Below are positions 1-64,000 of a stretch of 64,000 nucleotides of DNA, one piece after another. A model generated the notes under the pieces. The model was not told where the DNA came from. It did no database searches and was given only the letters and a program-made list of their open reading frames with translations. The number at the start of each line of letters is the position of its first letter. The first letter of the stretch is position 1. This DNA is from Octopus bimaculoides (taxonomy: Eukaryota): positions 33,239,855 through 33,303,854 of the forward strand of contig NC_068985.1 of assembly GCF_001194135.2 (NCBI RefSeq). Direction: 5' to 3'. The position numbers and the translations under genes are program-made.

Positions 1-86
1 ATAGATAGAAAGATGGAGGAAGACAGATAGATAAATAGATAGAAAGATAGATAGATAGATAGACAGATAGATAGATAGATAGATAG
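1..86. repeat. (GATA)n-type microsatellite
   Basis: Imperfect tandem atag/gata units at the start of the window. Confidence 0.9.
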
Positions 87-810
87 AAAGATAGTCACGT
101 CAGAATAATAGTAGACTTACTTGCAAAAAAGGACGTGTGCGTTCAATAATGTAATAATACAAAGAATATATATACATGTATACACACATATATGTACATA
201 CTTACATCTACATGTGTATATACATGCATATCAGGGTACAGGACGTTAGAACAATAAACTACAGACAACGGAACGAACACATGGGAAAACGGAAAGCCAC
301 TTGATATATATAAACTACAACTGAATCATCCAAAATACAATTCATCCAAACTGATACAAATAGACACAGTATGGATGCAAAATAGACACAAAATGAATTA
401 CAATCACTATAATACATCTCCTATCTATTCCCTTCCTTCACACCAAACAGAACACTGATATTTTTTTTCTTCTCAGCTACCAATTAGTACTTTAATCTTT
501 GGATGTAGCTAGAGCTTCCTGCTTTGGAATTTTTTGACAAGATTTTGCAGTAAGAAACACGTCATCAGCCCATAAAAGTTCTCAGGGACATCTTGTCTTG
601 AACTGTAAATGTATGCAAGGCTGAGGACAGAGCCCTCATGAACATCTGTGGACTAAATTACTCGCTGAACTTGCTACCTATTCTTACCTTGCCTTCACAA
701 TATATTTGTATGCCCCGAGCTTACGTAGAACTTGCCAAAGTGATGAATGCGAAGTACTGTTGAAGGCATATTTTTAGTTGCCTCCCTTTTACTGGTCTCC
801 TGACAAGATG

Positions 811-1692
811 TATGAGGGGTACCCAAAAGTAACTGGAAACGTTCTGTGTGGGACAAACCTGTTGTAGTTCAGGCTTCTGCTACTAGAAGCCACTTGATAT
901 GGCCCTCAGGCATCAATTTGCTGACCAGTGGTGGTGGCTAAGGCCATACTGCCATGTGGTGTGTCCTTGTTTTGCAGTACTTCTCCCTTGTTCATCAATT
1001 TGTGATGGCTGAAATGGAGGAACAGCGTGCTTCGGTAAAATTCTGTTTTCTACTGGGGAAAACAGCAGCCAAAACAATTGTCATGCTTCAAACAGCTTAC
1101 AAGGATGCTGCCATGTGCAAAACACAAATTTACAAGTGATTTTCACACTTTAGGAATGGTCACTTGTCACTTAAAGACCAATCTTGTTCAGGACAACCAT
1201 CAACCTCCCAAACGAATGAAAATTCATGAACTGATCTTGGAGGACTGTCACCAAACAGTTGACAAACTTGTTGATATGACTAGTGTGTCCTAGAGCTCCT
1301 GCCAATGAATTTCGAGCAAGGAATTATGACTGAAAAGAGTTGCAGCAAAATTTGTGCCTCACTTGCTCACGGAAGATCAAAAGCAGTCATAACTAAATGC
1401 ATGTCATGAACTGAAAGAAAAGTTGGAAGTTGATCCGGACCTTTTTTTCAAAGGTTATCACTGGTGACAAAAGCTGGTGCTATGGAATTTGCAGATGTGG
1501 AAGAGGTGAAGAAAAAATCGATGGAGGCATTAAAAGGCATCACTTTGCAAAAGTTCCAGCATGGCTTCAAATAGTGGAAAATGCACCTAGACTGATGCAT
1601 TGCTTCAAATGGAGAATACTTTGAAGATGATTGAATTTAAATAAATAAAATAATATTGTAAAATTCCAGTTTCCTTTGGGTAGCCCCTCATA
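811..1692 (+). mobile_element. Internally deleted mariner (Tc1/mariner) transposon
   Basis: ~30-bp TIRs TATGAGGGGTACCCAAAAGTAACTGG / CCAGTTTCCTTTGGGTAGCCCCTCATA with terminal TA. Broken transposase reads MEEQRASVKFCFLLGK...KRVAAKFVP...KVITGDKSWCYG, then jumps to FADVEEVKKK, so the catalytic middle is missing. Confidence 0.9.
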
Positions 1693-1954
1693 CTTCTGAA
1701 AACAAGATTACTCAGCTTTGAGAATATCTGACACAGAACCTTTATTTTTTGATGATGGTATAAGATATTTTAAAATTGTTTGGATAGTTATTCGAATTTT
1801 TAAAAAATATCTGTAAATATTTATGGAACCTATTGCTTTTCTCATGCCACTGTACTGTTAATTTAATGTTTCACTTTTGACTATTTTAAAAATTTAGCTA
1901 AGTATTTTTGTATTTTAATTTATAATACTGTATTTTTTTCTTGTTAAATATCAG

Positions 1955-2046
1955 GTTTTTGATAAGCTCATTGATAGCCATGGATACCATATCACCATTC
2001 ATTAAAATTTATGTAAATGAATTTCATAAAATACCAAACAAATTAG
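1955..2046 (+). CDS. Candidate upstream exon of the plus-strand helicase-like gene
   Basis: Acceptor ...aaatatcag|G and donor TTAG|gtaatt inside the 161-codon ORF 1941-2426. Reads FLISSLIAMDTISPFIKIYVNEFHKIPNKL. No recognisable homology. Confidence 0.3.
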
Positions 2047-2109
2047 GTAATTATGATATAATTTTATTTTTAATTATTATTTCTTGTTTCTCCTGTTGTC
2101 CATTGTTAG

Positions 2110-2349
2110 CAACCATGATTACCTTCAGAGTTATTCAAACCCCATCTTCCAGGTTTCTCTTTCAAGATGTGGATGTGCATAATTGTGAAGGTTGCTTGCT
2201 AAAAGTATTTCTTTCTAAGTTGGGCTGTCTTTTGCAAATTTCTAGCAACATTCTTGGAGATCTGCTATTTTTTTACTTCCATGAACAAGTTAAAATTGAT
2301 GTGAGCTTTGGTCCTTCTTTAGCTAGCCAAAAGATGCTGAGAATTTCCT
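2110..2349 (+). CDS. Candidate upstream exon of the plus-strand helicase-like gene
   Basis: Pyrimidine-rich acceptor ttgttag|CA in phase 1, after a 63-nt putative intron. Frame is open. Donor CCT|gtaaat at 2350 gives phase 1, matching exon 9768. The 3' boundary is uncertain; an alternative donor GAT|gtgagc lies at 2301. Confidence 0.3.
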
Positions 2350-2633
2350 GTAAATACATGTCCTCAATGTTGCCACATGATATAGTTTCCTCTAAGATTG
2401 TTCTTTCTCATAGTCTTTGGCTCTAAAAGACAATGGAATACCAATGCAGAACAAAGATGTGTATGTCCACAAGGCATTGCATACACTTGCAGTTAATGTA
2501 ACAGTAGTAATATGAAAAAGGAATTTTCCTTATTATGAAAAGTATGAAATTTGCTGTCAAAACCAGAAAGTCAAGTGCTAAATTAAATTACTTAAATTAG
2601 TGTGCTCTAATTCTAGATACATATCAATGATCC

Positions 2634-4050
2634 TCATCATCATCATTTAACATTTGCTTTCCATGCTGGCATGGGTTAGACAGTTTGACTGGAACTGGTA
2701 AGCCAGAGAGCTGCACCAGATTCCAGTCTGATTTTGACTTGATTTCTACAGCTGGATGCCCTTCCTAATGCCAATTACTCCAAGAGAGTAGTGGGTGCCT
2801 TTTATGTGTCACCAACACTGGTGCTTTTACGTGTCACAGGCATAGGTGCTGTTACATCATCTTCACTGTCCACAACTACAATTTCACTTGGCTTGATGAG
2901 ACTTCTGAAGCACAACAAATTACCAAAGGTCACAATCACTTGTCATCACCTCCGTGAGACTCCATATTCAAAGATCAGACTTCACCACCTCTTCCCATAT
3001 CTTCTTGGGTCTACATTTTCAATAGGTTCCTTCCACAATTAGAGATCAGCACTTCTTTACACAGTTATCCTCATCCATATGCATCACATGACCAGCACAG
3101 TTGCCTCTCTTGAACACCACATCTGATGCCTCTTGTACCCAATTTTTCTCTCAAGATGCTTACACACTGTCAGACATGGCCTTTGTTGCCAACAAAAGTA
3201 GAAGCTCTCTGAACTTTGCCCAGCCTCTTTTTATTCTAGCAGCTACACTCTAGGAGCAATCGCCTCCACTACTGACTTTTGTTGTTCCTGTACATCTGCC
3301 ATGCACAAAGACTATTTTCCCTGTTAACCTTCCTCTGATATTGATGCACCTCTCATATGTCCATAGCTTTCACCAGGTACCCCATATGGAGTTTCTACCT
3401 ATGTCTTTTCTACATATTGAGCAGGGTCATCTACCTGAATAGATTTTTGATTTGTCTGCTTTCCTACTTACTAAGACTTTGGTTTTTACTAAATTAACTC
3501 TAAGGCTCTTTGATTCCAGACCTTGCTTCCATACCTGAATTTTTTTTCTACATTTCTAGTTGTGATTCAGCAATAACAACAAGGTCATCAGCATAGAGGA
3601 GCTCCCATGGGCAGCCCGACTCAAATTCCTCTGTTATTGCCTGGAGGACTATGATGATCAGGAGGGGGCTGAGGGCTGATCCTTGGTGAACTCCTATTTC
3701 TACACTGAATTCATCGCTATACTTGTTGCCAACCCTCACCTTACTGACAGAGTCCCTGTACATGGCTTGTACAGCTCTCACCAACCACTCATCTATCTCT
3801 AGATTCTGCAATGACCATCAGATAAGGGATTGAGGGACCCTGTCAACAGCTTTCTCTATGTCAGCAAAAGCCAAGTACAGAGGTGTATTTTTGGCTAGGT
3901 ACTTCTCCTGCAGCTGCTTTACCAGGAATGTAGCATCAGTGGTGCTTCTCCCTGACACAAAACTAAGCAGCATCTCATCTTACCTAACTCTCTTCCTAAT
4001 TAGTTGGGCTATGACCCTCTCCATAACTTTCATCACCTGATTTGACCCTC
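2634..4050 (-). mobile_element. RTE-clade LINE, 5'-truncated and degenerate
   Basis: Minus-strand RT motifs (GVHQGSALSPLL...CPWELLYADDLV in ORF 3548-3811), family 3'UTR and (GAT)n tail at ~2634. Confidence 0.85.
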
Positions 4051-4881
4051 TCCACGTAAATATATTATTCATTTCAGCAAAACTAGAGGATTTTAAAAAT
4101 ATGACCTGCTATAATAGTAAAATAAAAAAAAAATTTGTTGATGCCTTTTATGAAGTTTGGATGCAATACCACCATCTGTCCCTGTTCTATCTCTGCAATT
4201 GAAAACCAGCTGCTGTGACAACTAAAATGAGTAGAAATTTTAAATGTAAAATGAAAAGCATTATTTTATTAGACTACACTATTTGCAGTAAGAAATCTTA
4301 ATGGAATTCTATTCAGTGTTCAAAATGACGTCTTGTGAATACAACTAAAGCATTTCTCAACAGATATTTACAAAATCATGAATGCCTTGTATTGGAACAA
4401 AACCATGAGTGTCACTCATAACAGTTCAAGAATTTCTTAAAAGTGTACCTGTATAAAAATAAACAGAGTGTATTAAATTTCTCTCTGCCAAGACTTTTTT
4501 GTAAGAATATGGATATTAGATGCATCAAAGTTAAATGATCATGTATTAGAAAGGCTACACACATGAAATCCATTCAAGAATGACAGCACAAACAAGCTGA
4601 GAGAGAAACTGAACATAAGATGTATTAGATGTAGTGTGAAGAGGGAAGATTGTGTTTGTATGAGCATGTGGCATGTATGAAGGAGGGCGGCTTTATAAAA
4701 AAGGGCTGTATGTCCAAAGTGAATGGGAGCTGCATAAGAGAGAAACTAAAGAAGACTTGGAAATAAGTGATGAAGACAGATCTAAGGTAGTTGATGGAAT
4801 TGCATTGATTGGTGAAATACTGTGCAGAAAACTCTTTATTCAGGCATGATGAAACAGATGTTAAAATTTCTGTATATAAGT

Positions 4882-5161
4882 GCAGGCATGGCTGTGTGGT
4901 AAGAAGTTTGCTTCCAAACTACATGATCTTGGGTTCAGTTTCATTGCGTGTCTTCTTACGCAGGTGTCTTTTACTCTAACTTCAGGCTGATCAAAGCCTT
5001 GTGAGTAGATCTGGTTAGCAGAAACTAAAAGAAGCCCATTATTTATATGTATGTGTGTATGTATGCATGCATGCATGCGTGAATGTATACACATTCACAC
5101 ACACATGCACATGTGTATGTGTTTGTGTCCTCCACCCACCACTGCTACTGCTTGACAACTG
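4882..5161 (+). mobile_element. tRNA-derived SINE (family A), 5' part only
   Basis: Head GGCTGTGTGGTAAG...GGTTCAGT and body matching the copies at 17755, 47033 and 49296. Ends abruptly at the RTE fragment. Confidence 0.8.
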
Positions 5162-6396
5162 GCGACCAAGTCAGTAGCGAGGGAGGGTGCGCTGAAAGTG
5201 TAGCTGCTAGAATAAGAATAGCCTGGGCAAAGTTTAGAGAGCTCTTACCTCTGCTAATGACAAAGGGCTTCTCGCTCAGAGTAAAAGGCAGACTGTATGA
5301 CGCATGTGTGCAAACAGCTATGCTACATGGCAGTGAAACATGGGCCGTGACTGCTGAGGACATGCATAAGCTCGCAAGGAATGAAGCCAGTATGCTCCGA
5401 ATGATGTGTAATGTCGGTGTGCATACTTGACAGAGTGTAAGTACCTTGAGAGAAAAGTTGAACCTAAGAAGCATCGGTTGTGGTGTGCAAGAGAGAGACG
5501 ATTGCATTGGTATGGTCATTTGGCGAGAATGGATAAGGATAGGTGTGTGAAAAAGTGTCACAGCCTAGCGGTTGAGGGTACCTGTGGAAGAGGTAGACCC
5601 AGGAAGACCTGGAATGAGGTGGTGAAGCACGACTTTCGAACATTAGGCCTCACCGAGGCAATGACTAGTGACCGAGACCTTTGGAAATATGCTGTGCATG
5701 AGAAGACCCGGCAAGAAAAGTGAGACCTGAATCCAAGGCCTCTGCCAGGGGTGTAGCCAGCCCACTTATGCATACCTTTCCTTCTTTGGACACAAAACTC
5801 TGCTTGCGAAGACCTGTTGAGGCAGGTGAAATCGAAATCGAAATTGAACCAAATTCGACGACTGGCACCCATGCCAACCTTCCTTCATTGGACACTAAAC
5901 TCAGCTTGCGAAGACCTGTTGGGGCAAGTGAGATCGAAACTGAACCAAACTTGATGACTGGCACCTGTGCCAGTGGAGCGCTAACAGCACCATCCAAGCG
6001 GGATCACTGCCAAAACAGTGGTCTGACTCCCATGCCAGTGGCACATAAAAAGCACCATTTGAGCGCAATCATTTCCAGCTTCGCCTCACTGGCACTTGTG
6101 CCGGTGACATGTGAACAAAACATTAGACTGACTCCTGTGCAGGTGGCACATAAAAGACACCATTTGAGCGTGGCTGTTGCCAGTACTGCCAGACCGGCCC
6201 TTGTTCCGATGGCACGTAAAAGCACCCACTACACTCTCGGAGTGGTTGACGTTAGGAAGGGCATCCAGCTGTAGAAACTCTGCCGGATCAGATTGGAGCC
6301 TGGTGCAACCATCTGGTTCGCCAGTCCTCAGTCAAATCGTCCAACCCATGCTTGCATGGAGAGCGGACGTTAAACAATGATGATGATGATGATGAT
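5162..6396 (+). mobile_element. RTE-clade LINE 3' fragment (RT C-terminus, 3'UTR, (GAT)n tail)
   Basis: GDQVSSEGGCAESVAARIRIAWAKFRELLPLL...GRGRPRKTW..., followed by the 3'UTR and gatgatgat tail. Confidence 0.9.
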
Positions 6397-6399
6397 ATA

Positions 6400-6860
6400 T
6401 ATTGCTTCCCTGCGCAAAGAGAAATTGAAGCTCTGACGTCTGGTAACTGACTTGGTAAATGCCCACAAAATTATTAACCATCATGCCAACAACCACCTTG
6501 ATCTTCTTTTTGAGCTCCACGTGTCTAACACACATAGGTCTAGCACACAAAGTCAGAAAACAGCACCCCTGTATGACTTTTGGAAACATTTTTTTACACT
6601 CAGAGTTGCTGATGCATGAAACAAACTACCTGCATCAGTTGTTAGTTGCCAAGACATTGTATCCTTTAAAACCACCATGCTTCCTGAAAGTCAGCAACAC
6701 TACACCTGATATCCACCCCTCCATACGCATGCTTATATGTTTATCACGACTCATACACTGTTCATTTTCTTGAGTTTTGTACATAATTGTATATGCTATA
6801 CATGCACTTTTGATGTGTTGCTGTGCACCTGAGCACTATAAACAACAATTTCATTATTAT
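6400..6860 (+). mobile_element. CR1/L2-type LINE 3' fragment
   Basis: Degenerate translation resembles the CR1 RT C-terminus (LVTDLVNAHKIINHH...FFTLRVADA*NKLPASVVSC), followed by a 3'UTR-like tail. Confidence 0.6.
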
Positions 6861-7482
6861 ATAGATATATACGTATATAAAAAATTGATAACCAAGCAGA
6901 GAGTAGGGATTTATTCACATCCAAAACTTTTTTATTAAATATTAAGAAGTTTTCTGCGGCATATATAACATTGACCAACATGTTTCTACTGCGATTGCAC
7001 ATTGCTCTGTATGCAGTTATGTATATGTATATAGGTAGGGTATTTCACCATATTCAATTAGACCCATCTATCACAGTAAAAGTGAGGTGCTAAAAGCATT
7101 AGGTTTGTGAATACACTCACTGGGTCCTGTTTCTGTCAAGCTTTTCCCGCCTCTCAACTTCCCAATACCTTCCACCTTCACATTTATAATAATGGCACCG
7201 TTCATCTGCTATAAATCATATGACATCAAAATCTACACATATTTCTTCCTCTTTACATTACTAGTTACCTTCCCCTCTCCCTGCTTTATTTTCACTAGTC
7301 ACACCTTTCTATACCTGCAAGTATGTATTCCTCTCCCCTGAGCTACATCTTAGAAATGCCTAGCCCCATTTTTAATACCCTTTCATATCTGCCTCACCAT
7401 TGTCCTTCACTTACTACAGCCATCATTACATATTTCTAATATTCATCACTGTCCTTGTATATCTTTTTCTCCCCCATTCTCA

Positions 7483-9224
7483 TATAGGAAAGTGGGTTAT
7501 ACATCTTTAGATTGTATACCTGACTTCCTACTATAAAATTAACGAATATAACGGAACGCTGAACTCCAGACTATCAACTTAAACAACACTTTATTTAGGT
7601 AGTAAATATATAACCACATCTTTAGTTCTTGTTGTTACATCTTCTGTGTGTATGAGCATAGTGCTGGGATGTTGTTCTATAGATGTGAGCGAGCGTAGGT
7701 CCGAAAGATGTAGAGAGACAGCTTAAACACACGTCCATGCTCAATCGCTGGCCAGCGAGAAAGAGAATGAATTGAGCGGGAAACACTTGCTTGTTTAATT
7801 CCACGCATGCGCACGGCGTTACTACAGAGCTCCCTTGCCAGTGCGGAAACGCACGATAAATGAAATCTGTTAGAACGCCTGAGGCAGGATGGCCACTGAA
7901 AACCACCCACAAGATGTGGTACAAACACACACACAAAGAAAATTCAAAGAAATGAAATGTACACTTGTGAAATACATGCATGCAACGTATAAATGAAATG
8001 ACAATGACAAAACAACTGTGATGACAACTGTCCANNNNNNNNNNNNNNNNNNNNNNNNNNNNNNNNNNNNNNNNNNNNNNNNNNNNNNNNNNNNNNNNNN
8101 NNNNNNNNNNNNNNNNNNNNNNNNNNNNNNNNNNNNNNNNNNNNNNNNNNNNNNNNNNNNNNNNNNNNNNNNNNNNNNNNNNNNNNNNNNNNNNNNNNNN
8201 NNNNNNNNNNNNNNNNNNNNNNNNNNNNNNNNNNNNNNNNNNNNNNNNNNNNNNNNNNNNNNNNNNNNNNNNNNNNNNNNNNNNNNNNNNNNNNNNNNNN
8301 NNNNNNNNNNNNNNNNNNNNNNNNNNNNNNNNNNNNNNNNNNNNNNNNNNNNNNNNNNNNNNNNNNNNNNNNNNNNNNNNNNNNNNNNNNNNNNNNNNNN
8401 NNNNNNNNNNNNNNNNNNNNNNNNNNNNNNNNNNNNNNNNNNNNNNNNNNNNNNNNNNNNNNNNNNNNNNNNNNNNNNNNNNNNNNNNNNNNNNNNNNNN
8501 NNNNNNNNNNNNNNNNNNNNNNNNNNNNNNNNNNNNNNNNNNNNNNNNNNNNNNNNNNNNNNNNNNNNNNNNNNNNNNNNNNNNNNNNNNNNNNNNNNNN
8601 NNNNNNNNNNNNNNNNNNNNNNNNNNNNNNNNNNNNNNNNNNNNNNNNNNNNNNNNNNNNNNNNNNNNNNNNNNNNNNNNNNNNNNNNNNNNNNNNNNNN
8701 NNNNNNNNNNNNNNNNNNNNNNNNNNNNNAGTCGTGTTGACGATGGTTGGAGATGTTGGTAATGTGTAGTTCAGTCTCCATGGCCGTATTTGTTCTTTAG
8801 TCGGGGTTCACCAGTTATAGGTTGGTAGTCCAGAGTCCATGCTGCGTTTTTCTTCGTCGGGGGTCACCACTTTAGTAGAAAATGGGTTATACATCTTTAG
8901 ATTGTATACCTGACTTCCTACTGTAAAATTAAAGAATATAACGGAATGCTGAACTCCAGACTATCAACTTAAACAACACTTTATTTAGGTAGTAAATATA
9001 TAACCACATCTTTAGTTCTTGTTGTTACAGCTTCTGTGTGTATGAGCATAGTGCTGGGACGTTGTTCTATAGATGTGAGCGAGCTGTCGAGCGTAGGTCC
9101 GAAAGATGTAGAGAGACAGCTTAAACACACATCCATGCTCAATTGCTGGCCAGCGAGAAAGAGAATCAATTGAGCGGGAAACGCTTGCTTGTTTAATTCC
9201 ACGCATGCGCACGGCGTTACTACA
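7483..9224 (-). mobile_element. LTR retrotransposon (Gypsy-like); two LTRs with most of the internal region in an N gap
   Basis: Direct repeats 7483-7826 and 8873-9224 start TGTAGTA on the minus strand. TSD CTCA at 7479-7482 and 9225-9228. PBS TGGTGACCCCCGACG at 8869-8855. Purine-rich GGCAAGGGAG precedes the 3' LTR. Confidence 0.85.
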
Positions 9225-9767
9225 CTCACATCATCTCCCTATTTTCCTGTCTATCTGCAGATTTTCCCTATTTTCTTTTTTATTGCAGGTTTATTATATT
9301 GTTGTTCTCCACTCTTTCTATGCTGCTACTTATCACCTACTTCTGCGTGAACTACTTTTTTTCTTTTCTTTTCTTTTTTTGTACCTTTATCATTGGCCAC
9401 ACTTCCATCCTTGTATATTATTAAATTGCATCTCTAATCATCTTTCTCTTCTCACATTAATGAACTTACCATCCACATTTCCCTCTTCAGTTCAATTTCC
9501 CCTCTTATACCCACCTTCTTGTACCTTGAAAGTGTGCTCTGACACCTCATCACCCTCATTATCTTCATTCCAGCTACTCTCACCTGTACCAGTATAATGT
9601 GAAGTAGCTATTTATCATTTCTGCCCTTCTATCTCTCAACTTCCCTCTTATCTCTCAACACTTGGCATAACGCCACCTTCCTTTCTACTATAACCCCACC
9701 CAGTTGAGTGGGGGTTTCCTTAATATTTATTACTCGTTTATTAATGTATTTTCAAAATACTTTTCAG

Positions 9768-9941
9768 TTGAGCAAATCTTTCCTGAGCAAATTGAAAAAT
9801 ATGAATATCCAACAAATGGTGTTCGCATTAGCGAATTGGTAAAATGGTTATCTTTAGCCAGTAATGATGACAGAATGAAAACTGAAAAATATCAAATTAT
9901 TGTTTGTTCTAAGGAAGACTCTACACTAGATGCAATAGCAA
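9768..9941 (+). CDS. Exon of an unnamed SF1 (senataxin/UPF1-like) pseudo-helicase gene
   Basis: tttcag|TTGAG...GCAA|gtaagt, 174 nt, phase 1->1. Reads EQIFPEQIEKYEYPTNGVRISELVKWLSL...YQIIVCSKEDSTLDAIA; IIVCS..STLD resembles motif Ia LVCAPSNAAVD. Confidence 0.75.
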
Positions 9942-10136
9942 GTAAGTACTCTGCTTGACAGTTTTGTAATCACAATCACAGTCTACATTACAAATAATAG
10001 TTGATTGCAATGGACATGGTGATTATTAACTATAATTAATTTTTTTTTTTTTTGTGAAGACAAGGAGAAACACTTCTCTGAAGGCAGTTCTACTTTATAT
10101 ACCATATATAATCTCATCTTTATGAATATGTTACAG

Positions 10137-10515
10137 TGGAGGTGCAATGGCCCAGTGGTTAGAGCAGTAGACTCGTGGTCATAGGATTGCGGTTTTGATT
10201 CCCAGACTGGGCATTGTGAGTGTTTATTGAGTGAAAACACCTAAAGCTCCATGTGACTCCAGCAGGGTGTGGTGGCGAACCCTGCTGTATTCTCCCACTA
10301 CAACTTTCTCTCATTCTTTCTTCCTGTTTCTGTTGTACCTGTATTTCAAAGGGCCAGCCTTGTCGCACTCTGTGTCACATTAAATCTCCCCGAGAACTAA
10401 GTTAAGAGTACATGTGTCTGTGGAGTGCTCAACCACTTGCACATTAATTTCACGAGCAGGCTATTCAGTTGATCGGATCAACTGGAACCCTCATCATAAC
10501 TGACAGAGTGCCACG
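10137..10515 (+). mobile_element. tRNA-derived SINE (family C)
   Basis: tRNA-like head with A/B-box-like TGGCCCAGTGG and GGTTTTGATTCCC, then a GC-richer body and short tail. Confidence 0.75.
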
Positions 10516-10914
10516 ATTACTACTAGGTGTCAAAGGAAAATTACATATCCATTCAAACTACTGTTAACTTTTCTTAATAAATTAACATTTTTCATATTCA
10601 ACCCATTCCTTTAAAATCATTACAATTCTCTATTTATTGCTTATGTTACATTAATATATAGCATCACATTCTTCTGCTAATTGAATGTGGTCTCTTCAGA
10701 GTTTGCCTTAAATGTATTATACATTTTGGTATTTGAGACAATATTGTACATGTGATTGTTTTATTTATTTTTTAGTTCAAAAATGATAAACTGACAGTGA
10801 AAGCTGTGGTTTTTAACTTACAATAAAGTGATTCTTTCACCTTATAACAATGCTATTGTTTCAATTTCTACCTGTGCAACTGCACCTCATCATATATTTA
10901 AGGGTTTATGAACA

Positions 10915-11285
10915 TTATCATTTAACATCTGTTGTCCATGCTGGCATGGGTTGGACAGTTTGACCAGAGCTGGCAAGTGGCGGTGCTGCACCAGACTCCA
11001 GTCTGATTATGCACGGTTTCTACAGCTGGATGCACTTCCTAATACCAACCACTTTACAGAGTGTGCTCGATGCTTTTATGTAGAAATGCACAGGCACTTT
11101 TACATGGTACCACCATAAGTGCTTCTGTTGCAGAGTATGGGTCTTCTTGAGTACAGCAAGGTGCCAGGCATCTTGGTCCTTTGTCATCTCACCTGAAAGG
11201 TTCAGTGTCCTGAAGTCATTCTTCAGTACTTCATACCATGTCTTTCTGGGTGTTCCACTTCTATGTATTCTATCCACTTTGAGAA
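10915..11285 (-). mobile_element. RTE-clade LINE 3' end
   Basis: Minus ORF ...GTPRKTWYEVLKNDFRTLNL... plus the shared 3'UTR and tail. Confidence 0.75.
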
Positions 11286-11505
11286 AATTTAAATATTTTG
11301 TTGATAACACATATAAGACAAAGATAGATGGTTTTTAATTTTTGATTATACTTATTTTCTTGAGGATACTAGTATTTGTTTTTTTTTTAGAAAGTCATGA
11401 GTATCACAAGTCTCAGTTTTTCACATTCTCTAAAAGAAAAACATTTGTATATAATGGAAACATGTTTTACACAGTTAAACTTTAACATTTCCTTTACATT
11501 TCCAG

Positions 11506-11837
11506 ATCAATTGAAAATTCAGCAGATATTAAAAAACTGTATCATGAGAGTAGCAGATGAAAAAACAGAAGACAACTATTTTGAAAAATACTGGCAATTA
11601 AATGTTACAATCAATTCACAAGATGATCTCACATATCTTCATGAACATCTATTGTGGAAGAATAGTTTGTTTCAAAATTACATGGCGACTGTGAAAGAGC
11701 TAAAAGCTACTGGAATTGATGTATCATTGGAAACAAATAAGTTCAAAGAAAATATATTGGCAAATTCCCATATAATTTTTTGCAACATTGTGACAACAAT
11801 CCGAATGTTATTCAAGAAATTAAACAAAAAGAAAATG
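11506..11837 (+). CDS. Exon of the unnamed SF1 pseudo-helicase gene
   Basis: tttccag|AT...AAAATG|gtaggt, 332 nt, phase 1->0, open throughout. Contains IMRVADEK and ILANSHIIFCNI (senataxin has LVRLGPEK and ILESHIICCTL). Confidence 0.75.
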
Positions 11838-12468
11838 GTAGGTTTATATACTCAATAAGGAAAAATGCAATGCAATAATTCTTATATTATTTTGATCTGA
11901 AAGAATTAAGTATCCAATTTTTCTTTTATTATATTTGCATTTTGTCATACACACACAATGACATTGAACATCCAATGGAGCGTTCTATCTAGTTCATTCC
12001 TTTTTAATCTTCATAGGTCCTCTGCATTCAGGACCTACATCTCACTAGCATTGCTGTTCATACACAAGCATCATATAATTTGCTTTTTCACTCTGAGACA
12101 TTTCATTACTAATAGGCATAATAGCTCTGAACTTTTTCCATCCCCTTCTCATTCCAGTAACTCTTTCAGAAATCCTTCTTCCACTGCTAATTTTGTCATT
12201 TAGTAACTCTCTGTTGCCTCAAGGGAACTTACTAAGCATTCCAAAAGAATCTTATTTCCTTTGTATTTTAAGTGTTTATTGCTCCTGCACATCTGCTACA
12301 TGTAATGTCTACTTTCTCCATTTAACCTCCCTGTGATTCCAATGCATCTCTTGTGTGTCCATAACTTGCACTGGGTAGACCATATAGAATTTCTACCTAC
12401 ACCTTTTCTACATATCAAGGAAAGTCCTGTCTATTTCCCTGCTTACTAAGAACTTGGTCTTCATTAAT

Positions 12469-14340
12469 CATCATCATCATCATCATTTAACGTCCGTTTT
12501 CCATGCTGGCATGGGTTGGATGGTTCGACTGAGGCCTGAAAAGCCAGCGGCTGCACCAGGCTCCAGTCTAATCTGGCAATGTTTCTACAGCTGGATGCCC
12601 TTCCTAATGCCAACTACTCCGAAAGTGTAGTGGGTACTTTTTATATACCACTAGCACAGGAGCCAGTCAGGCAACCATGGTATTGATCACGTTCAGATAG
12701 TGATATTTACGTGCCACCAGCATGGGAGCCAGTCAGCCGACCCTGGCATCGATCATATTCAGACAGTGCTTTTTATGTGCCACTGGCATGAGAGCTAATC
12801 AGGGGGCACTGGCTTCAACCACATTCGGATGGTACTTTTTACATGTCACCAGCACAGGAGCCAGTCAGGGGGCACTGGCCACAGCTACAATTTTGGTTTT
12901 ACTTGACTCAACAGGTCTTCTCAAGCATATCATATTGCCCAATGCATCAAGGGTACATTTAAATGAGCCAGACATGCAACATTGACATTGGCCATGGCTA
13001 TGATCTCACTTTAGTTGCCAGGTCTTCTCAATCACAGCATATCTCCAAAGGTCTAGGACTCCTATCACTGCCTCTGTGAGGCCCAATGTTCAAAAGTCAT
13101 GCTTCACCACCTCATCTCATGTCTTCCTGGGTCAACCTCTTTCACAGTTAGAGTGTGGCACTTCCTCACACAGCTGTCCTCTTCCATATGTAACACATGA
13201 CCATACCAAGGCAGTTGGCTCTCTCTTGTACACCACATTTGATGCTCCTTATGTCCAACTTTTCTCTCAGGGCACTCACGCTCTGTCGCGTATGCACACT
13301 GACATTACAGATCCAGCGGATCATACTAGCTTCATTTCTTTCAAGCCAACGCATGTCCTCAGCAGTCATGACCCATGTTTCACTGCTATATAGTATGGAA
13401 GTTCGCGCACATGCATCATACAGCTTACCTTTCATTCTGAGCGAGAGGCCCTTAGTTTCCAGCAGTGGTAGGAGCTCCCTGAATTTTGCCCAAGCTATTC
13501 TTATTCTAGCTGCTACACTCTCAGAGTATCCACCCCCACTACAGACTTGGTCGCCTAAGTAGCGGAAGCTATCAACTACTTCTAGTTTTTTCCTCTGGCA
13601 TGTGATGAAGTCTGTTTTCTGTACATCTTCAGCATTTATTACTGTGTGAATCTGCCACACAAAAGAACTATCTTCCTGGTTAACCTTCCTTTGATATTGC
13701 TGCATCTTTTATGTGTCCATAGCTTACACCGGGTACATCGTATGGAGTTTCTACCCATGCTTTTTCTATAGATCGAGCAGGGCCATCTACCTGAAGGAGT
13801 CTAGTTCTGGTAGTGACTCAGCTATTAGAGCAAGGTCATCAGCATAGAGGAGCTCCCAGGGGCACCCTGTCTTGAACTCCTCTGTTATTGGTTGGAGGAC
13901 TATGATGAATAAGAGGGGTCTGAGGACTGATTCTTGGTGAACCCTCTACTTCTACCTGGAATTCTTCACTATACTCGTTGCTAACCCTTACCTTACTGAC
14001 AGCATCTCTATACAGGGCTTGTACAGCTCTTACCAACCACTCATCCATCACCAGTTTCTGCATTGACCACAAGATAAGGGATTGAGGGACCCTGTCAAAG
14101 GCTTTCTCCGAGTCAACAAAAGCCAAGTACAGAGGTTTATCTTTGGTTTAGTATTTCTCCTGCAGTTGCCTTACCAGAAATATAGCATCAGTGGTGCTTC
14201 GGCCTTGCACAAAGCCAAACTGCATCTCATCTGGGTTAACTCTCTCCCTAATTAGTACTCTATGACCCTATTTGTAACTTTCATCACCTGATCCAATAAT
14301 TTGATATCCCTGTAGTTATTTCTATCTAAAGCATCACTTT
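12469..14340 (-). mobile_element. RTE-clade LINE (RT, 3'UTR and tail), degenerate
   Basis: Minus ORFs 13839-14126 (AFVDSEKAFDRVP) and 13166-13705 (FRYLGDQ...RIRIAWAKFRELL). (CAT)n tail at ~12469. Older RTE fragments flank it at ~12000-12460 and ~14400-15110. Confidence 0.9.
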
Positions 14341-15303
14341 TAGCTTTGTAGCAGTTGACTATGATGCTGCTACATCAGTCATTGGATATGACTCCTTCAT
14401 GAACTACCTGATTTACAATGCAGGTGACAAGACCATAACCCATTAATTTTAAGAACTTTTGATTCCAGCTTTTGCTTCCACCCCTGGAGTTTCTTTCATT
14501 ATTATAATACAGATTCTGTTATAAGAACAAGGTCATCAGCATTTAGTAGTTCCCACTAGCAACTAGTCTGATATAGCCTGAAGGACTAAGACACATAGGA
14601 GGCTGAGAACCAGGCCTTAGTGAACTCCTGCATGTACACTAAATTTGTTGCTAACTCTCACCTTTCTAACAGTATCCTTGTACATGACTTGTATGGCTCT
14701 TACAAAGCATCCCTCTATCCTAAACTTCCTCAGTGACCACCATATCACAGAGCAAGGGACTCTGTTGAAGATTTTCTCTTAATCAACAAATGCCAAGCTT
14801 ATTTTTGGCCAAATACTTCTGCAGTTGTCTAAGAAGATGGCATTAGTAATACTTCTCAACACAAAACCAAACTGCATCTCATTTACTCCAAATCTGCTCT
14901 TAATTAATTTGGCTATAACTCTTCCTGTAACTTTCATGAGCTGGTCCAAGAATTTGATAACATTGTAATTACTTCTAAGGCATCTCCTTGTAAAATTTGG
15001 CTAAAATGCTAGTATACCAATCTGGGTATGACACCTCTCTGTAAAACCTGATTAACTATACCAGTGACAATGCAATGATTCTTATGGAGAAGGAGCTTTT
15101 CCTGCCTTCATATCTTTAGTTTCTTTATCTACCATAATAGATGAGGACAGTAACTTTTTAATCATTTTTACAATTTTTTTATTAAATTTATACTGTAATT
15201 TTAATCCTGAAAGTCAATGAAAGTTTGTGAAACTTAAAAGCATAAAAAGAAATTAGTCTTTTTGTTTTCCTAAATTATTTTCTTTTTTTTTTCCATCTTT
15301 CAG

Positions 15304-15402
15304 ATTGTTATAGCTGATGCTGCCAATCATACTGAAATGCCAGTTGTACTACCACTATTACTGAATAACATCCAGGGTGTTTTTCTGTTTACTACACCAT
15401 GA
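15304..15402 (+). CDS. Terminal coding exon of the unnamed SF1 pseudo-helicase gene
   Basis: Long polypyrimidine tract and cag|ATT in phase 0. Reads IVIADAANHTEMPVVLPLLLNNIQGVFLFTTP, then TGA TGA. AATAAA at 15812-15817. Confidence 0.7.
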   Translation: MVIADAANHTEMPVVLPLLLNNIQGVFLFTTP

Positions 15403-15939
15403 TGAATTCATTTTATTCAAAATGATATATAATTTTGCTTCTTAATTCAATTTTCTATAAGTTTTCTTGAATATATTTTCCTTTCTAAAAAACAACATGA
15501 ACTGATTAAATAATTATCTCTAAAAAGACCAAACTGATGTATCTATTATAAAAGATGTTAGTCTTCTGGAATTAGTATTCAAATATTAATATTATTTTTA
15601 TGTTTTGAAAAACTCTTCAATTTTATTATACATTTGTAGAATGAGTAATATCATTAGTGGTAAAGGAAATATTCTAAATGTAAAATATTTTTAAAAACTG
15701 AATTTTACCCCTATTTTAAAACAAAACGTTTGTAACAAAATTTCAATCTATTCTCAAAATATTCACTGGTGTTTGAAAATTTTTCAAAATTTTAAAATAT
15801 TAATCAATGGAAATAAAATTTTTAAATATTCATTTCTTTCCATATCTACCCATACTCGGTGCAAAAGTTCAAGCATCTCTATGAATTTTTGAGATAAGTT
15901 TTATACTCTCAGTCAAATAAGTACTTATTTTCTGAATAG

Positions 15940-16290
15940 TGAAGTAATGTGGAAGAGAGAGACCCAAGAGGATATGGGATGAAGTACTGAAAGCTGATCT
16001 CAAAATACTGAACCTTGTGAAGGAGATGGCAAAAGACCAAGATATGTGGCACATTGCTGTACTCAAGAAAACCTGCCCACCACAACAGAATTGAGATCTT
16101 AAGACCAAGGTGCGATGTAAAAAGCACCCAGTACTCTCTGTAAAGTGGTTAGCATTAGGAAGGGCAGGCATCCAGCCACAGAAACCAAGTCAAAACAGAC
16201 TTATATAATCTGGTGCAGCCCTTGGCCTTGCCAGTTCCTGTTAAGCTGTCCAACCCATGCCAGCATGGAAAATGGATGTTAGATGATGAT
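15940..16290 (+). mobile_element. RTE-clade LINE 3' end between the two convergent genes
   Basis: Same RT C-terminus, 3'UTR and gatgatgatga tail as the other copies. Confidence 0.75.
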
Positions 16291-16529
16291 GAATGTATTG
16301 CATTCAATGACTATAAAATAGATTAAACTCATAATTTTATACTGTCAAATTTTAAACATATTTACCTCTTACCTACTTTGCGACTATACTACATTTTAAA
16401 AACAACAATGAATATTTTCTTTAAAAAGAATACAATAAACTTTATCGAAAAATTTATTTACACATATATTTACAATATCCTCAAATAAATTTTGTCCATC
16501 ATATAGAAAAGACGTGAGCAAAAGCAACG

Positions 16530-53646
<37,117 letters not shown>

Positions 53647-59382: not shown

Positions 59383-60358
59383 TGGCGATCTTTCGATTAA
59401 AGTAGGAAGTCTATCAAAATTTCCAGTTGATTTGTTCGGCAATTTTCGTAAATAATTTTTATTTATTTACTCTTGTTTTCATGTCCAGTTTAAAGCCGAC
59501 AATTGCTCTGAAGTCTGTAAGGGAGGTGAAAAGTGAAACACACGCCCCCCCCCCCACACACACACCAATTATCTTTCATATACACCTACATAAATATGGC
59601 GGAGGTCAAGATCACTTTGCGATTTTTTTTTTTTTTNNNNNNNNNNNNNNNNNNNNNNNNNNNNNNNNNNNNNNNNNNNNNNNNNNNNNNNNNNNNNNNN
59701 NNNNNNNNNNNNNNNNNNNNNNNNNNNNNNNNNNNNNNNNNNNNNNNNNNNNNNNNNNNNNNNNNNNNNNNNNNNNNNNNNNNNNNNNNNNNNNNNNNNN
59801 NNNNNNNNNNNNNNNNNNNNNNNNNNNNNNNNNNNNNNNNNNNNNNNNNNNNNNNNNNNNNNNNNNNNNNNNNNNNNNNNNNNNNNNNNNNNNNNNNNNN
59901 NNNNNNNNNNNNNNNNNNNNNNNNNNNNNNNNNNNNNNNNNNNNNNNNNNNNNNNNNNNNNNNNNNNNNNNNNNNNNNNNNNNNNNNNNNNNNNNNNNNN
60001 NNNNNNNNNNNNNNNNNNNNNNNNNNNNNNNNNNNNNNNNNNNNNNNNNNNNNNNNNNNNNNNNNNNNNNNNNNNNNNNNNNNNNNNNNNNNNNNNNNNN
60101 NNNNNNNNNACATACAAAAAAGATGTATATATATTTATGTAAGTGCATACGAGTGTTTCACTATTCAACTCATGGACATGAAAATCAATGTGTGTGTGGG
60201 CCTGTGTTTCACTTTTCACTTCCCTCACCAACTTCAAGGGCAAATGTCGGCTTCAACCGGACATGAAAATAAAAATAAATAAAAATTCTTTACGGAAATT
60301 GCCTAACAAATCAACTGGGAATTTTGATAAACTTCCTACTTTAATCGAAAGATCGCCA
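59383..60358. mobile_element. Foldback/MITE with ~180-bp TIRs around an N gap
   Basis: TGGCGATCTTTCGATTAAAGTAGGAAG... at 59383 and ...CTTCCTACTTTAATCGAAAGATCGCCA ending at 60358. No convincing TSD. Confidence 0.75.
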
Positions 60359-61560: not shown

Positions 61561-61727
61561 CATCATCATCATCATCATCGTTTAACGTCCGCTTTCCATG
61601 CTAGCATGGGTTGGACGATTTGACTGAGGACTGGTGAAACCGGATGGCAACACCAGGCTCCAGTCTGATTTGGCAGAGTTTCTACAGCTGGATGCCCTTC
61701 CTAACGCCAACCACTCAGAGAGTGTAC
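61561..61727 (-). mobile_element. RTE-family 3' tail, young copy
   Basis: (CAT)n followed by CGTTTAACGTCCGCTTTCCATGC...GGATGCCCTTCCTAACGCCAACCACTC. Confidence 0.85.
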
Positions 61728-62084: not shown

Positions 62085-64000
62085 TAATTGACAGTACCTT
62101 GGTAGATAAAGCAATCAAGAGCATGAAGACAGGGAAAGCCCCCGGCCCTTCAGAAATCACTGCAGAGATGCTCAAAATATCTGGCAGTCGGCTAAAGCCT
62201 AGTCACATGTATAGTTAAGCAGGTGATACACGAATGAGTCATACCCAATAACTGGTGTAGCAGCACCATAGTCAACTGCTACAAAGGTAAAGGTGACGCT
62301 CTAGGCACAAACAATTACAGAAGTATCAAGTTGTTGGATCAGGTAATGAAGGTCACAGAGAGGGTCATAGCCCAACTAATCAGGGAGAGAGTCAGTTTAG
62401 ATGAGATGCAGTTTGGGTTCATGCCAGGGAAAAGTATCCCTGATGCTATATTTCTGGTAAGACAGCTGCAGGAGAAATACCTAGCCAAAGATAAACCTCT
62501 GTACCTGGCTTTCGTTGACATGGAGAAAGCCTTTGACAAGGTCCCCCAATCCCTTATCTGGTGGTCCATGAGGAAACTAGGGATNNNNNNNNNNNNNNNN
62601 NNNNNNNNNNNNNNNNNNNNNNNNNNNNNNNNNNNNNNNNNNNNNNNNNNNNNNNNNNNNNNNNNNNNNNNNNNNNNNNNNNNNNNNNNNNNNNNNNNNN
62701 NNNNNNNNNNNNNNNNNNNNNNNNNNNNNNNNNNNNNNNNNNNNNNNNNNNNNNNNNNNNNNNNNNNNNNNNNNNNNNNNNNNNNNNNNNNNNNNNNNNN
62801 NNNNNNNNNNNNNNNNNNNNNNNNNNNNNNNNNNNNNNNNNNNNNNNNNNNNNNNNNNNNNNNNNNNNNNNNNNNNNNNNNNNNNNNNNNNNNNNNNNNN
62901 NNNNNNNNNNNNNNNNNNNNNNNNNNNNNNNNNNNNNNNNNNNNNNNNNNNNNNNNNNNNNNNNNNNNNNNNNNNNNNNNNNNNNNNNNNNNNNNNNNNN
63001 NNNNNNNNNNNNNNNNNNNNNNNNNNNNNNNNNNNNNNNNNNNNNNNNNNNNNNNNNNNNNNNNNNNNNNNNNNNNNNNNNNNNNNNNNNNNNNNNNNNN
63101 NNNNNNNNNNNNNNNNNNNNNNNNNNNNNNNNNNNNNNNNNNNNNNNNNNNNNNNNNNNNNNNNNNNNNNNNNNNNNNNNNNNNNNNNNNNNNNNNNNNN
63201 NNNNNNNNNNNNNNNNNNNNAGTAGCTCAGGAGCAATAAACACTGAAAATGTGCAGAGAACAACTTCTGCCACATTCCAAGGAGAAAAACTAGAAGTAGT
63301 TGATAGCTTCCGCTATCTAGGTGACCAAGTCAGTAGCGGAGAAGGGTGCACTGAAAGTGTAGCTGCTAGAATAAGAATAGCCTGGGCAAAGTTCAGAGAG
63401 CTCTTACCTCTGCTGGTGACAAAGGGCCTCTCGCTCAGAGTAAAAGACAGACTGTATAACGCATGTGTACGAACAGCCATGCTACATAGCAGTGAAACAT
63501 GGGCTGTGACTGTTGAGGACATGCGTAAGCTCACAAGGAATGAAGCCAGTATGCTCTGATGGATGTGTAATGTCAGTGTGAGAGAAAAGTATTGGACACT
63601 AAACTCAGCTTGCGAAGACCTGTTGGAGCAAGTGAGATCGAAACTGAACCAAATTTGATGACTGGCACCTGTGCCAGTGGAGCACTAACAGCACCATCCA
63701 AGCGGGATCACTGCCAGAGCAGTGGTCTCACTCTCATGCTGGTGGCACGTAAAAAGTACCATTTGAGCGTGATCGTTTCCAGCTTCACCTTACTGGCATT
63801 TGTGTACCGTTGGCATGTGAACAAAAGATGGGACTGACCCCTGTGCAGGTGGCACGTGAAATACACCATTTGAGTGTGGCCGCTGCCAGTACTGCCAGAC
63901 TGGCTCTCGTGCTGGTGGCACGTAAAAAGCATCCACTACACTCTTGGAGTGGTTGGCGTTAGGAAGGGCATCCAGCTGTAGAAACTCTGTCAAATAAGAT
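62085..64000 (+). mobile_element. RTE-clade LINE (RT to 3'UTR), gapped, internally deleted, continuing past the window end
   Basis: MQFGFMPGKS..DAIFLVRQLQEKYL...AFVDMEKAFDKVP and FRYLGDQ...RIRIAWAKFRELL. At ~63590 it jumps into the 3'UTR, missing ~0.4 kb relative to 5162-6396. Confidence 0.9.

Follow-up and report, generated by a model that had tools for sequence, protein, structure and literature searches.

At the left end of a 64,000-nucleotide stretch of the Octopus bimaculoides genome (NCBI RefSeq assembly GCF_001194135.2, contig NC_068985.1, forward-strand positions 33,239,855 to 33,303,854; hereafter the window, with positions counted from its first letter) lie four exons, lettered E to H here, that read in a single frame and end at a double stop. 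A SEL1L-like gene converges on them from the opposite strand, and the surrounding DNA is AT-rich and eukaryotic; interspersed repeats are numerous in it, and the assembly has four gaps (Table 1). An initial annotation, made from the letters of the sequence, had recognized three of the exons and read them as a senataxin- or UPF1-like half-helicase of about 200 amino acids (aa) with both ATPase motifs dead. On balance, we take the four exons to be the last coding exons of a multi-exon, UPF1-like superfamily 1 (SF1) helicase gene, closest to the MOV10/Armitage type, whose protein would carry a noncatalytic tail derived from a RecA1 lobe.

Each of exons F, G, and H is preceded by an acceptor made up of a polypyrimidine tract and AG, and the donors of F and G read gtaagt and gtaggt. 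Joined from phase 1 to 1, 1 to 0, and 0 to stop, the three give an open reading frame (ORF) of 200 aa that ends in TGA TGA, so that the annotated coordinates and phases stood. Because about 7% of random codons in this AT-rich window would be stops (a rough estimate from composition), 200 open codons are not a matter of chance. No start codon occurs before residue 36 of this peptide (the M in DDRMK), and no ATG was found in the open stretch ahead of exon F (9671-9767). Exon E is bounded by an AG acceptor and a gtaatt donor; because it is entered in phase 2, the reading frame must arrive from farther upstream. The exon that precedes E in the argonaut gene described below (exon D, 796 nt) has no counterpart in window positions 1-1954, and the window thus begins within the intron before exon E. 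The intron between E and F spans 7.7 kb and includes one run of undetermined bases; an exon hidden in that gap (8035-8729) is unlikely, because the argonaut has none between E and F. Pfam searches of plus-strand ORF stretches on either side, at 1-9955 and at 15.3-23.2 kb, brought up no additional helicase domain and only a Mos1-type transposase remnant. A regular-expression search for helicase motifs I to VI in all six frames of the window gave nothing credible, and bacterial promoter and terminator scans of the window were uninformative.

An exhaustive HMMER (phmmer) scan of 1.84 billion representative proteins, with exon G alone as the query, yielded a single real homologue: "hypothetical protein Ahia01_000569900, partial" of Argonauta hians (E = 6.9e-9, 35% identity over 99 residues). 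The three remaining matches were discarded as repetitive proteins. A word-indexed protein search with the spliced 192-aa peptide gave no match, a result of limited reach: for the SEL1L-like neighbor, this type of search did not list the argonaut protein among its best 120 matches (all <410 aa), so its silence on other cephalopods says little; phmmer of the peptide against PDB sequences gave no match either. So far, the tail is known from two octopod lineages, and our searches reached it in no other annotated protein.

The first 305 residues of the argonaut protein comprise the end of AAA_11 (E = 1.9e-14) and a full AAA_12 (E = 9.5e-28), with core motifs that look intact (FIDEAAQALE, LSGDSYQIRP, ENYRC, NTQGKEF, and SRAKYSVIVVG). 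A linker of ~230 aa follows, and then a tail that aligns with all of the window exons and ends at the same alignment position (...HKLILFTK before TAA in the argonaut and ...GVFLFTTP in the window). The argonaut coding sequence could be rebuilt exactly from its locus (in BAAFZT010000027.1; argonaut positions below are those of this locus), where an upstream ORF reads LNENQRKAV...IIGSFGTGKTETL...ILISTHTN and so has the Q-like element, the Walker A motif, and motif Ia in their true form. Because this upstream ORF supplies those three elements, the argonaut gene appears to encode a complete and apparently active core that annotation seems to have split between two models. In the parts of the locus concerned (6450-6662 and 9851-10300), the exon with Walker A (IIGSFGTGKTETL...ILISTHTN) is assigned to the upstream model, and the open frame ahead of the first residue of the partial protein (...SAADLFIVKYL...) continues motif Ia.

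The agreement between the two loci extends to gene structure. The last four exons measure 92, 168, 332, and 96 nt in the argonaut versus 92, 174, 332, and 99 nt in the window, differences that are all multiples of three, and all eight splice sites and the exon phases (2, 1, 1, and 0) are conserved. Exons E, F, G, and H pair with positions 20419-20510, 23526-23693, 25814-26145, and 26719-26814 of the argonaut locus, respectively. Exon E matches the argonaut protein at E = 0.04 by tblastn, and the region around it (1901-2115) is colinear with argonaut positions 20367-20579 at 65% identity by blastn. In both genomes, the helicase gene lies tail to tail with the SEL1L-like gene, and the argonaut's Sel1-repeat exons match the window's minus strand at 86-97% aa identity; the loci are orthologous. 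The search for an orthologue recommended by the initial annotation thus succeeded once, with the same stop position and the same motif losses. We infer that in O. bimaculoides, too, splicing joins these exons to those of an intact helicase core; the 5' part of the gene would lie upstream of the window, and the four exons would make up a C-terminal module of ~230 aa.

Profile comparisons make it likely that the tail descends from RecA1. Among the 24,736 Pfam families scanned, AAA_11 ranked first for the window peptide (E = 9.5e-5, 22.7 bits; residues 80-189 on profile positions 146-237 of 257), for the window tail with exon E added (AAA_11 at E = 1.5e-4, 22.1 bits) and, independently, for the argonaut tail (E = 1.4e-5, 25.4 bits). 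With 10 shuffled tails as queries, no P-loop family was matched, and the best shuffle reached E = 0.004 with an unrelated domain of unknown function. By hhalign, a profile of the two tails aligned with 12 MOV10-like relatives over 132 colinear columns (E = 4.3e-4), from the helix after Walker A through motif Ia to motif II, in the order Ia, Ib-like strand, pre-II strand, and II. In this alignment, QIIVCSKEDSTLD falls on ILVCTPSNSAAD, IMRV on LLRL, IIFCNIVTT on VIVSTCTT, and IVIADAANHTEMPVVLPLLL on HIIIDEAAQVMEPEALIPLSL; exon H aligns with HIIIDEAAQVMEPEALIPLSLA. By eye, the place of the LNxxQxxAV element in exon E is taken by VNEFHKIPN in the window and LNEFDNMAV in the argonaut, at the expected distance before the P-loop, compared with LNENQRKAV in the true argonaut core.

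A number of results weigh against this picture. Both tails score between 22 and 25 bits, under the gathering score of 27 that Pfam sets for membership in AAA_11; the HMMER comparison proposed at the outset therefore placed the expected family first but below threshold. The hhalign probability for the match between the tails and the relatives is only 34%, a local hidden Markov model of the 12 relatives scored the tails no better than 2000 shuffles, and a PDB profile search with the tail was not significant. Compared with the argonaut's own RecA1, the tail gave E = 0.065 over 44 columns, in the motif II region only. In an AlphaFold2 model of the argonaut protein, the block-mean predicted local distance difference test score (pLDDT) is 37-64 in the tail, where the first half is modeled, at low pLDDT, as helix-strand-helix-strand, as expected, and the second half as helices rather than alpha/beta. 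Furthermore, it is a computational gene model that joins the tail to the core in the argonaut.

With every match below threshold, the family model and the PDB profile search failing, and the AlphaFold2 model unconfident, the tail could instead be a lineage-specific alpha/beta or helical domain that is not helicase derived and whose likeness to AAA_11, around "IVIADA..E..PLL," is convergent or accidental. Against this stand two orthologues that are 34% identical to each other and yet each rank AAA_11 best, on overlapping parts of the profile over motif II; the failure of shuffles to produce such a match; the colinearity of the hhalign columns in motif order; the LNEF..AV element at its upstream position; and the host protein, itself a helicase of this kind. 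We consider a nonhelicase origin unlikely, and the RecA1 lobe of a UPF1-like SF1 helicase, the source named in the initial annotation, most likely.

Two narrower proposals were also considered. The tail as an internal duplicate of the gene's own RecA1 is not supported, the comparison reaching only the E value of 0.065 in the motif II region, and a recent duplication of an exon block is disfavored because intron positions differ between the tail and the true RecA1. A by-eye likeness of the linker to a degenerate MOV-10 beta-barrel found no support from Pfam or from hhalign (E = 0.3).

The catalytic residues of the lobe are gone in both species. Where the true argonaut RecA1 has GSFGTGKT (within IIGSFGTGKTETL), a by-eye comparison finds GSLMNNLND in the argonaut tail and YPTNGVRIS in the window, and the pattern GxxxxGK[ST] is absent from both tails. 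At Walker B (motif II, DExx), the window has ADAAN and the argonaut ADADY, both set on DEAAQ by hhalign. The reported loss of both ATPase motifs, with no lysine in the P-loop and ADAA at Walker B, is thus confirmed and extends to the argonaut, although the Walker B register first drawn was one residue off. Because the two species differ even at the P-loop position, nucleotide binding is, by the sequences, not the property retained in the tail.

In both species, the ORF halts one to two residues past the strand ahead of motif III, and motif III itself (GDxxQL) is absent. AAA_12 was not found in plus-strand ORF stretches of at least 30 aa between 15.4 and 23.2 kb, and the SEL1L-like gene has its stop at ~16530, ~1.1 kb from that of the helicase gene. 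Since that stop is so near and no AAA_12 follows on the plus strand, the protein would truly end at motif III, without RecA2, as had been suggested. Because every enzymatic feature of membership fails, the tail is to be called helicase derived, not a helicase. Pseudohelicases are recognized by degenerate motifs together with selection; here, motif loss in both species is accompanied by a retained ORF, retained splice sites and exon lengths, and weak constraint.

That constraint was assessed against the neighboring gene and against simulation. The tails (231 aa in the window and 228 aa in the argonaut) align with few gaps at 34% identity and 59% similarity, whereas the SEL1L-like neighbor has ~96% protein identity between the same two species. 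Over 186 codons, that neighbor has a nonsynonymous rate (dN) of 0.039 and a synonymous rate (dS) of 0.80, for a ratio (omega) of ~0.05; the corresponding values for the tail are 0.54 and 0.89 by NG86 and 0.57 and 0.96 by YN00, with omega at ~0.6 by either method. Under neutrality, 2.6% of simulations kept the ORF open at 0.1 substitutions per site; the figure fell to ~0.2% at 0.2, and at 0.4, roughly the divergence that each lineage contributes, not one of 5000 runs kept it. Repeats aside, only the four exons and their immediate flanks give colinear DNA matches between the orthologous intervals, and the introns no longer align. In 200 neutral runs matched on third-position identity (d of about 0.8), identity averaged 25.6% (34.2% observed), positives 43.7% (59.5% observed), and the BLOSUM score per site 0.73 (1.69 observed), each observed value exceeding all 200 runs. 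Conservation falls on the hydrophobic strands QIIVCSK, IMRV.D, IIFC..TT, IVIADA, LPLL, and LFT. We conclude that the tail is, as its substitution pattern indicates, translated and under weak but real protein-level constraint. The earlier view of the peptide as maintained rather than decaying is borne out by ORF retention and by similarity beyond neutral simulations; omega, offered there as a further check, does fall below 1, but only to a value that speaks of weak constraint.

The main rival to a constrained, RecA1-derived tail is a trapped relic, in which a dead duplication fragment is still spliced in, its frame is kept only to avoid nonsense-mediated decay, and its peptide is idle. Such a relic would account for the low identity of the tail beside its well-conserved neighbor. 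The NG86 omega of 0.60 is only marginal, because the same method yields ~0.8 under stop-purged neutrality (p of about 0.03-0.07), and exon H, which nonsense-mediated decay does not police, shows no significant ORF retention when taken alone; both are as a relic would have it. The excess of identity, conservative replacements, and BLOSUM score at matched third-position divergence argues against a relic, though not decisively, and two further observations point the same way: the conserved positions coincide with hydrophobic strands that a RecA lobe should have, and the stop is identical in both lineages. We judge an idle relic rather unlikely.

The exons could also be an untranscribed pseudogene fragment, the remains of a second, tandem helicase gene that the argonaut gene model has glued onto the first. 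The loss of all catalytic motifs, the very high divergence, and the presence of the exons in one annotated protein only, an automatic partial model, would suit a fragment of this kind; however, ~230 open codons in both lineages at a dS of ~0.8-0.9 are essentially impossible without selection (0 of 5000 simulations), and splice sites, phases, and exon lengths have been kept while the surrounding introns have lost alignment, which makes this very unlikely. Least credible of all is the stand-alone protein of ~200 aa first envisaged, regulating Sen1/Upf1-type enzymes in trans, for although it has a clean ORF, a conserved stop, a possible poly(A) signal, and a conceivable short isoform from an internal promoter on its side, it would lack a start codon, exon F is entered in phase 1 from an exon E that is itself entered in phase 2, and in the argonaut the same exons close a single continuous ORF that includes the helicase core.

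With its AAA_11 and AAA_12 domains and its DEAAQ, GDxxQ, and NYR motifs, the argonaut host core resembles MOV10, MOV10L1, Armitage, and SDE3, which are UPF1-like helicases of superfamily 1B (SF1B). Some of its nearest database relatives, P0007 and P0014 among them, have MOV-10 beta-barrel or Ig-like domains, and others are named MOV10L1; relatives P0005 and P0006, which comprise transcripts and an intronless gene on a metagenome contig, are without the tail. In the upstream ORFs of the argonaut, Pfam did not detect MOV-10 N-terminal domains. Among solved structures, the core is closest in sequence to UPF1/NAM7, followed by a "5'-3' RNA helicase-like protein" and IGHMBP2. Senataxin/Sen1 belongs to the same UPF1-like SF1B superfamily and so has the same motif order, but no specific affinity was found, and the indirect evidence leans toward MOV10 and UPF1. 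Helicases of this class are usually linked to RNA silencing and retroelement control, and fast evolution would suit a genome-defense helicase. Described MOV10-type members end soon after RecA2, and to our knowledge, no described member has at its C terminus a second RecA1-like lobe that is truncated and devoid of motifs.

More than one UPF1-like module per polypeptide is generally known from HELZ2-type proteins, in which two complete UPF1-like cores with intact motifs share one protein. The second module here differs in being half a core that is without ATPase residues and stops at motif III. A helicase fold kept after loss of its ATPase motifs has a parallel in MUT-15 of Caenorhabditis elegans, a DEAD-box-like pseudohelicase (DEAD to NNAE) that has no ATPase activity and serves as an RNA-binding scaffold for a complex of a small-RNA pathway (bioRxiv 10.64898/2026.09.04.749402). 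MUT-15, in which the fold is reused for binding or scaffolding, is a stand-alone protein of the superfamily 2 type with both RecA-like domains, whereas the octopod tail is a single SF1-type lobe in cis to an apparently active core. Yeast Utp25 and Deinococcus radiodurans PriA are reported as further pseudohelicase scaffolds.

The convergent neighbor is a Sel1-repeat gene of the endoplasmic reticulum-associated degradation adaptor type, and its protein has a C-terminal transmembrane stretch. Its exons have 86-97% aa identity to the argonaut neighbor and 58-67% to SEL1L of other animals, and further 5' exons probably lie beyond 33.4 kb. One of its introns holds a Mos1/mariner-type transposase remnant (HTH_48, E = 1.7e-10; Transposase_1, E = 3.6e-16), and a far weaker HTH_48-like fragment (E = 0.028) occurs near the start of the window. 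Reverse-transcriptase fragments of one family resembling a long interspersed nuclear element (LINE) recur in the window (RVT_1, E = 2.8e-7 and 2.4e-11); one of them fills much of the intron between G and H, and the same family is present in the argonaut locus. About 10 copies of a short interspersed repeat (translating to ...CWHGLDSLT...) occur in both orientations, two of them in the introns between exons F, G, and H, and the repeat is also frequent in the argonaut locus. A tRNA-like head, ggcccagtggttagagc...gattcccagac, in the intron after exon F suggests a tRNA-derived short interspersed nuclear element (SINE); no tRNA was called anywhere in the window by ARAGORN. An open frame of 152 aa, rich in Q, D, E, and N and without a Pfam match, might belong to the SEL1L-like gene as an N-terminal exon, belong to a different gene, or be due to chance.

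Table 1. Features of the Octopus bimaculoides window (positions within the 64,000-nucleotide stretch)
Feature	Position	Strand	Remarks
Exon E	1955-2046	+	92 nt, phase 2 in, 1 out; encodes FLISSLIAMDTISPFIKIYVNEFHKIPNKL; absent from the initial annotation
Exon F	9768-9941	+	174 nt, phase 1 in, 1 out; P-loop and motif Ia remnants; exon 1 of the initial annotation
Dead Walker A position YPTNGVRIS	9806-9832	+	Read from the sequence; no glycine-rich loop, no lysine
Motif Ia remnant QIIVCSKEDSTLD	9893-9931	+	QIVICSKEEDFLN in the argonaut; conserved across both species; on the ILVCTPSNSAAD column block of MOV10-like relatives by hhalign
Exon G	11506-11837	+	332 nt, phase 1 in, 0 out; IMRVADEKTE strand, helical insert, IIFCNIVTT strand; exon 2 of the initial annotation
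Exon H (last coding exon)	15304-15402	+	99 nt, phase 0 to stop; includes helix MPVVLPLLL
Walker B remnant IVIADAANHTE	15304-15336	+	In exon H
Strand VFLFTTP	15379-15399	+	In exon H
Stop codon TGA	15400-15402	+	Followed by a second TGA
ATTAAA, possible polyadenylation signal	15505-15510	+	~105 nt past the stop; pattern match only, no evidence of use
SEL1L-like gene (Sel1-repeat)	16530-33450	-	Converges on the helicase gene
SEL1L-like exons	16530-16679, 19641-19775, 19936-20109, 21197-21289, 25822-26007, 29120-29287, 31476-31574, 32810-32908, 33373-33450	-	
Mos1/mariner-type transposase remnant	18504-19400	+	
HTH_48-like fragment	942-1136		
LINE-like reverse-transcriptase fragments, one family	3551-3817, 13169-14147	-	
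LINE-like reverse-transcriptase fragment, same family	62238-62579	+	
Related LINE-like fragments	5083-5720, 63316-63684		
Short interspersed repeat copies	2630-2797, 6229-6400, 10895-11064, 12459-12630, 16132-16295, 43212-43599, 50307-50567, 51548-51718, 61581-61721, 63789-63999		Both orientations occur
tRNA-like head	10120-10230		
152-aa open frame	50801-51256	-	
Assembly gaps (N runs)	8035-8729, 34140-34149, 59637-60109, 62585-63220		

If the tail is what we take it to be, the module would have arisen from a second, partial copy of RecA1 that starts at the LNxxQ element, takes in motifs I, Ia, and II, and breaks off at the strand preceding motif III. The module would be translated as the tail of the helicase and kept loosely, the hydrophobic pattern of the fold being held and most surface residues turning over. 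Because the P-loop and the Walker B acids are lost and there is no RecA2, such a module would be unable to bind or hydrolyze ATP as a helicase does. A dead lobe on a live motor would most plausibly act in cis, as a noncatalytic binding or regulatory appendage, and might pack against the active core or present a surface on which RNA or a partner protein could dock. In a more specific and decidedly unlikely version, the octopods would have a MOV10/Armitage-type helicase in which the dead half-lobe is a working part, for example, a cis decoy that gates the motor, with its fast turnover reflecting an arms race with transposons or viruses; gating of this sort, if true, would be SF1 helicase regulation of a kind not previously described.

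Because its exons are missing from every annotated protein reached except one partial argonaut model, cephalopod gene sets probably carry the gene in a misannotated or truncated form. If the tail is a trapped relic, it would be a neat case of a reading frame that has been kept although the protein it encodes does little. If it is functional, it would represent a motor protein that has reused half of its engine as a noncatalytic module, a lineage-specific cephalopod innovation.

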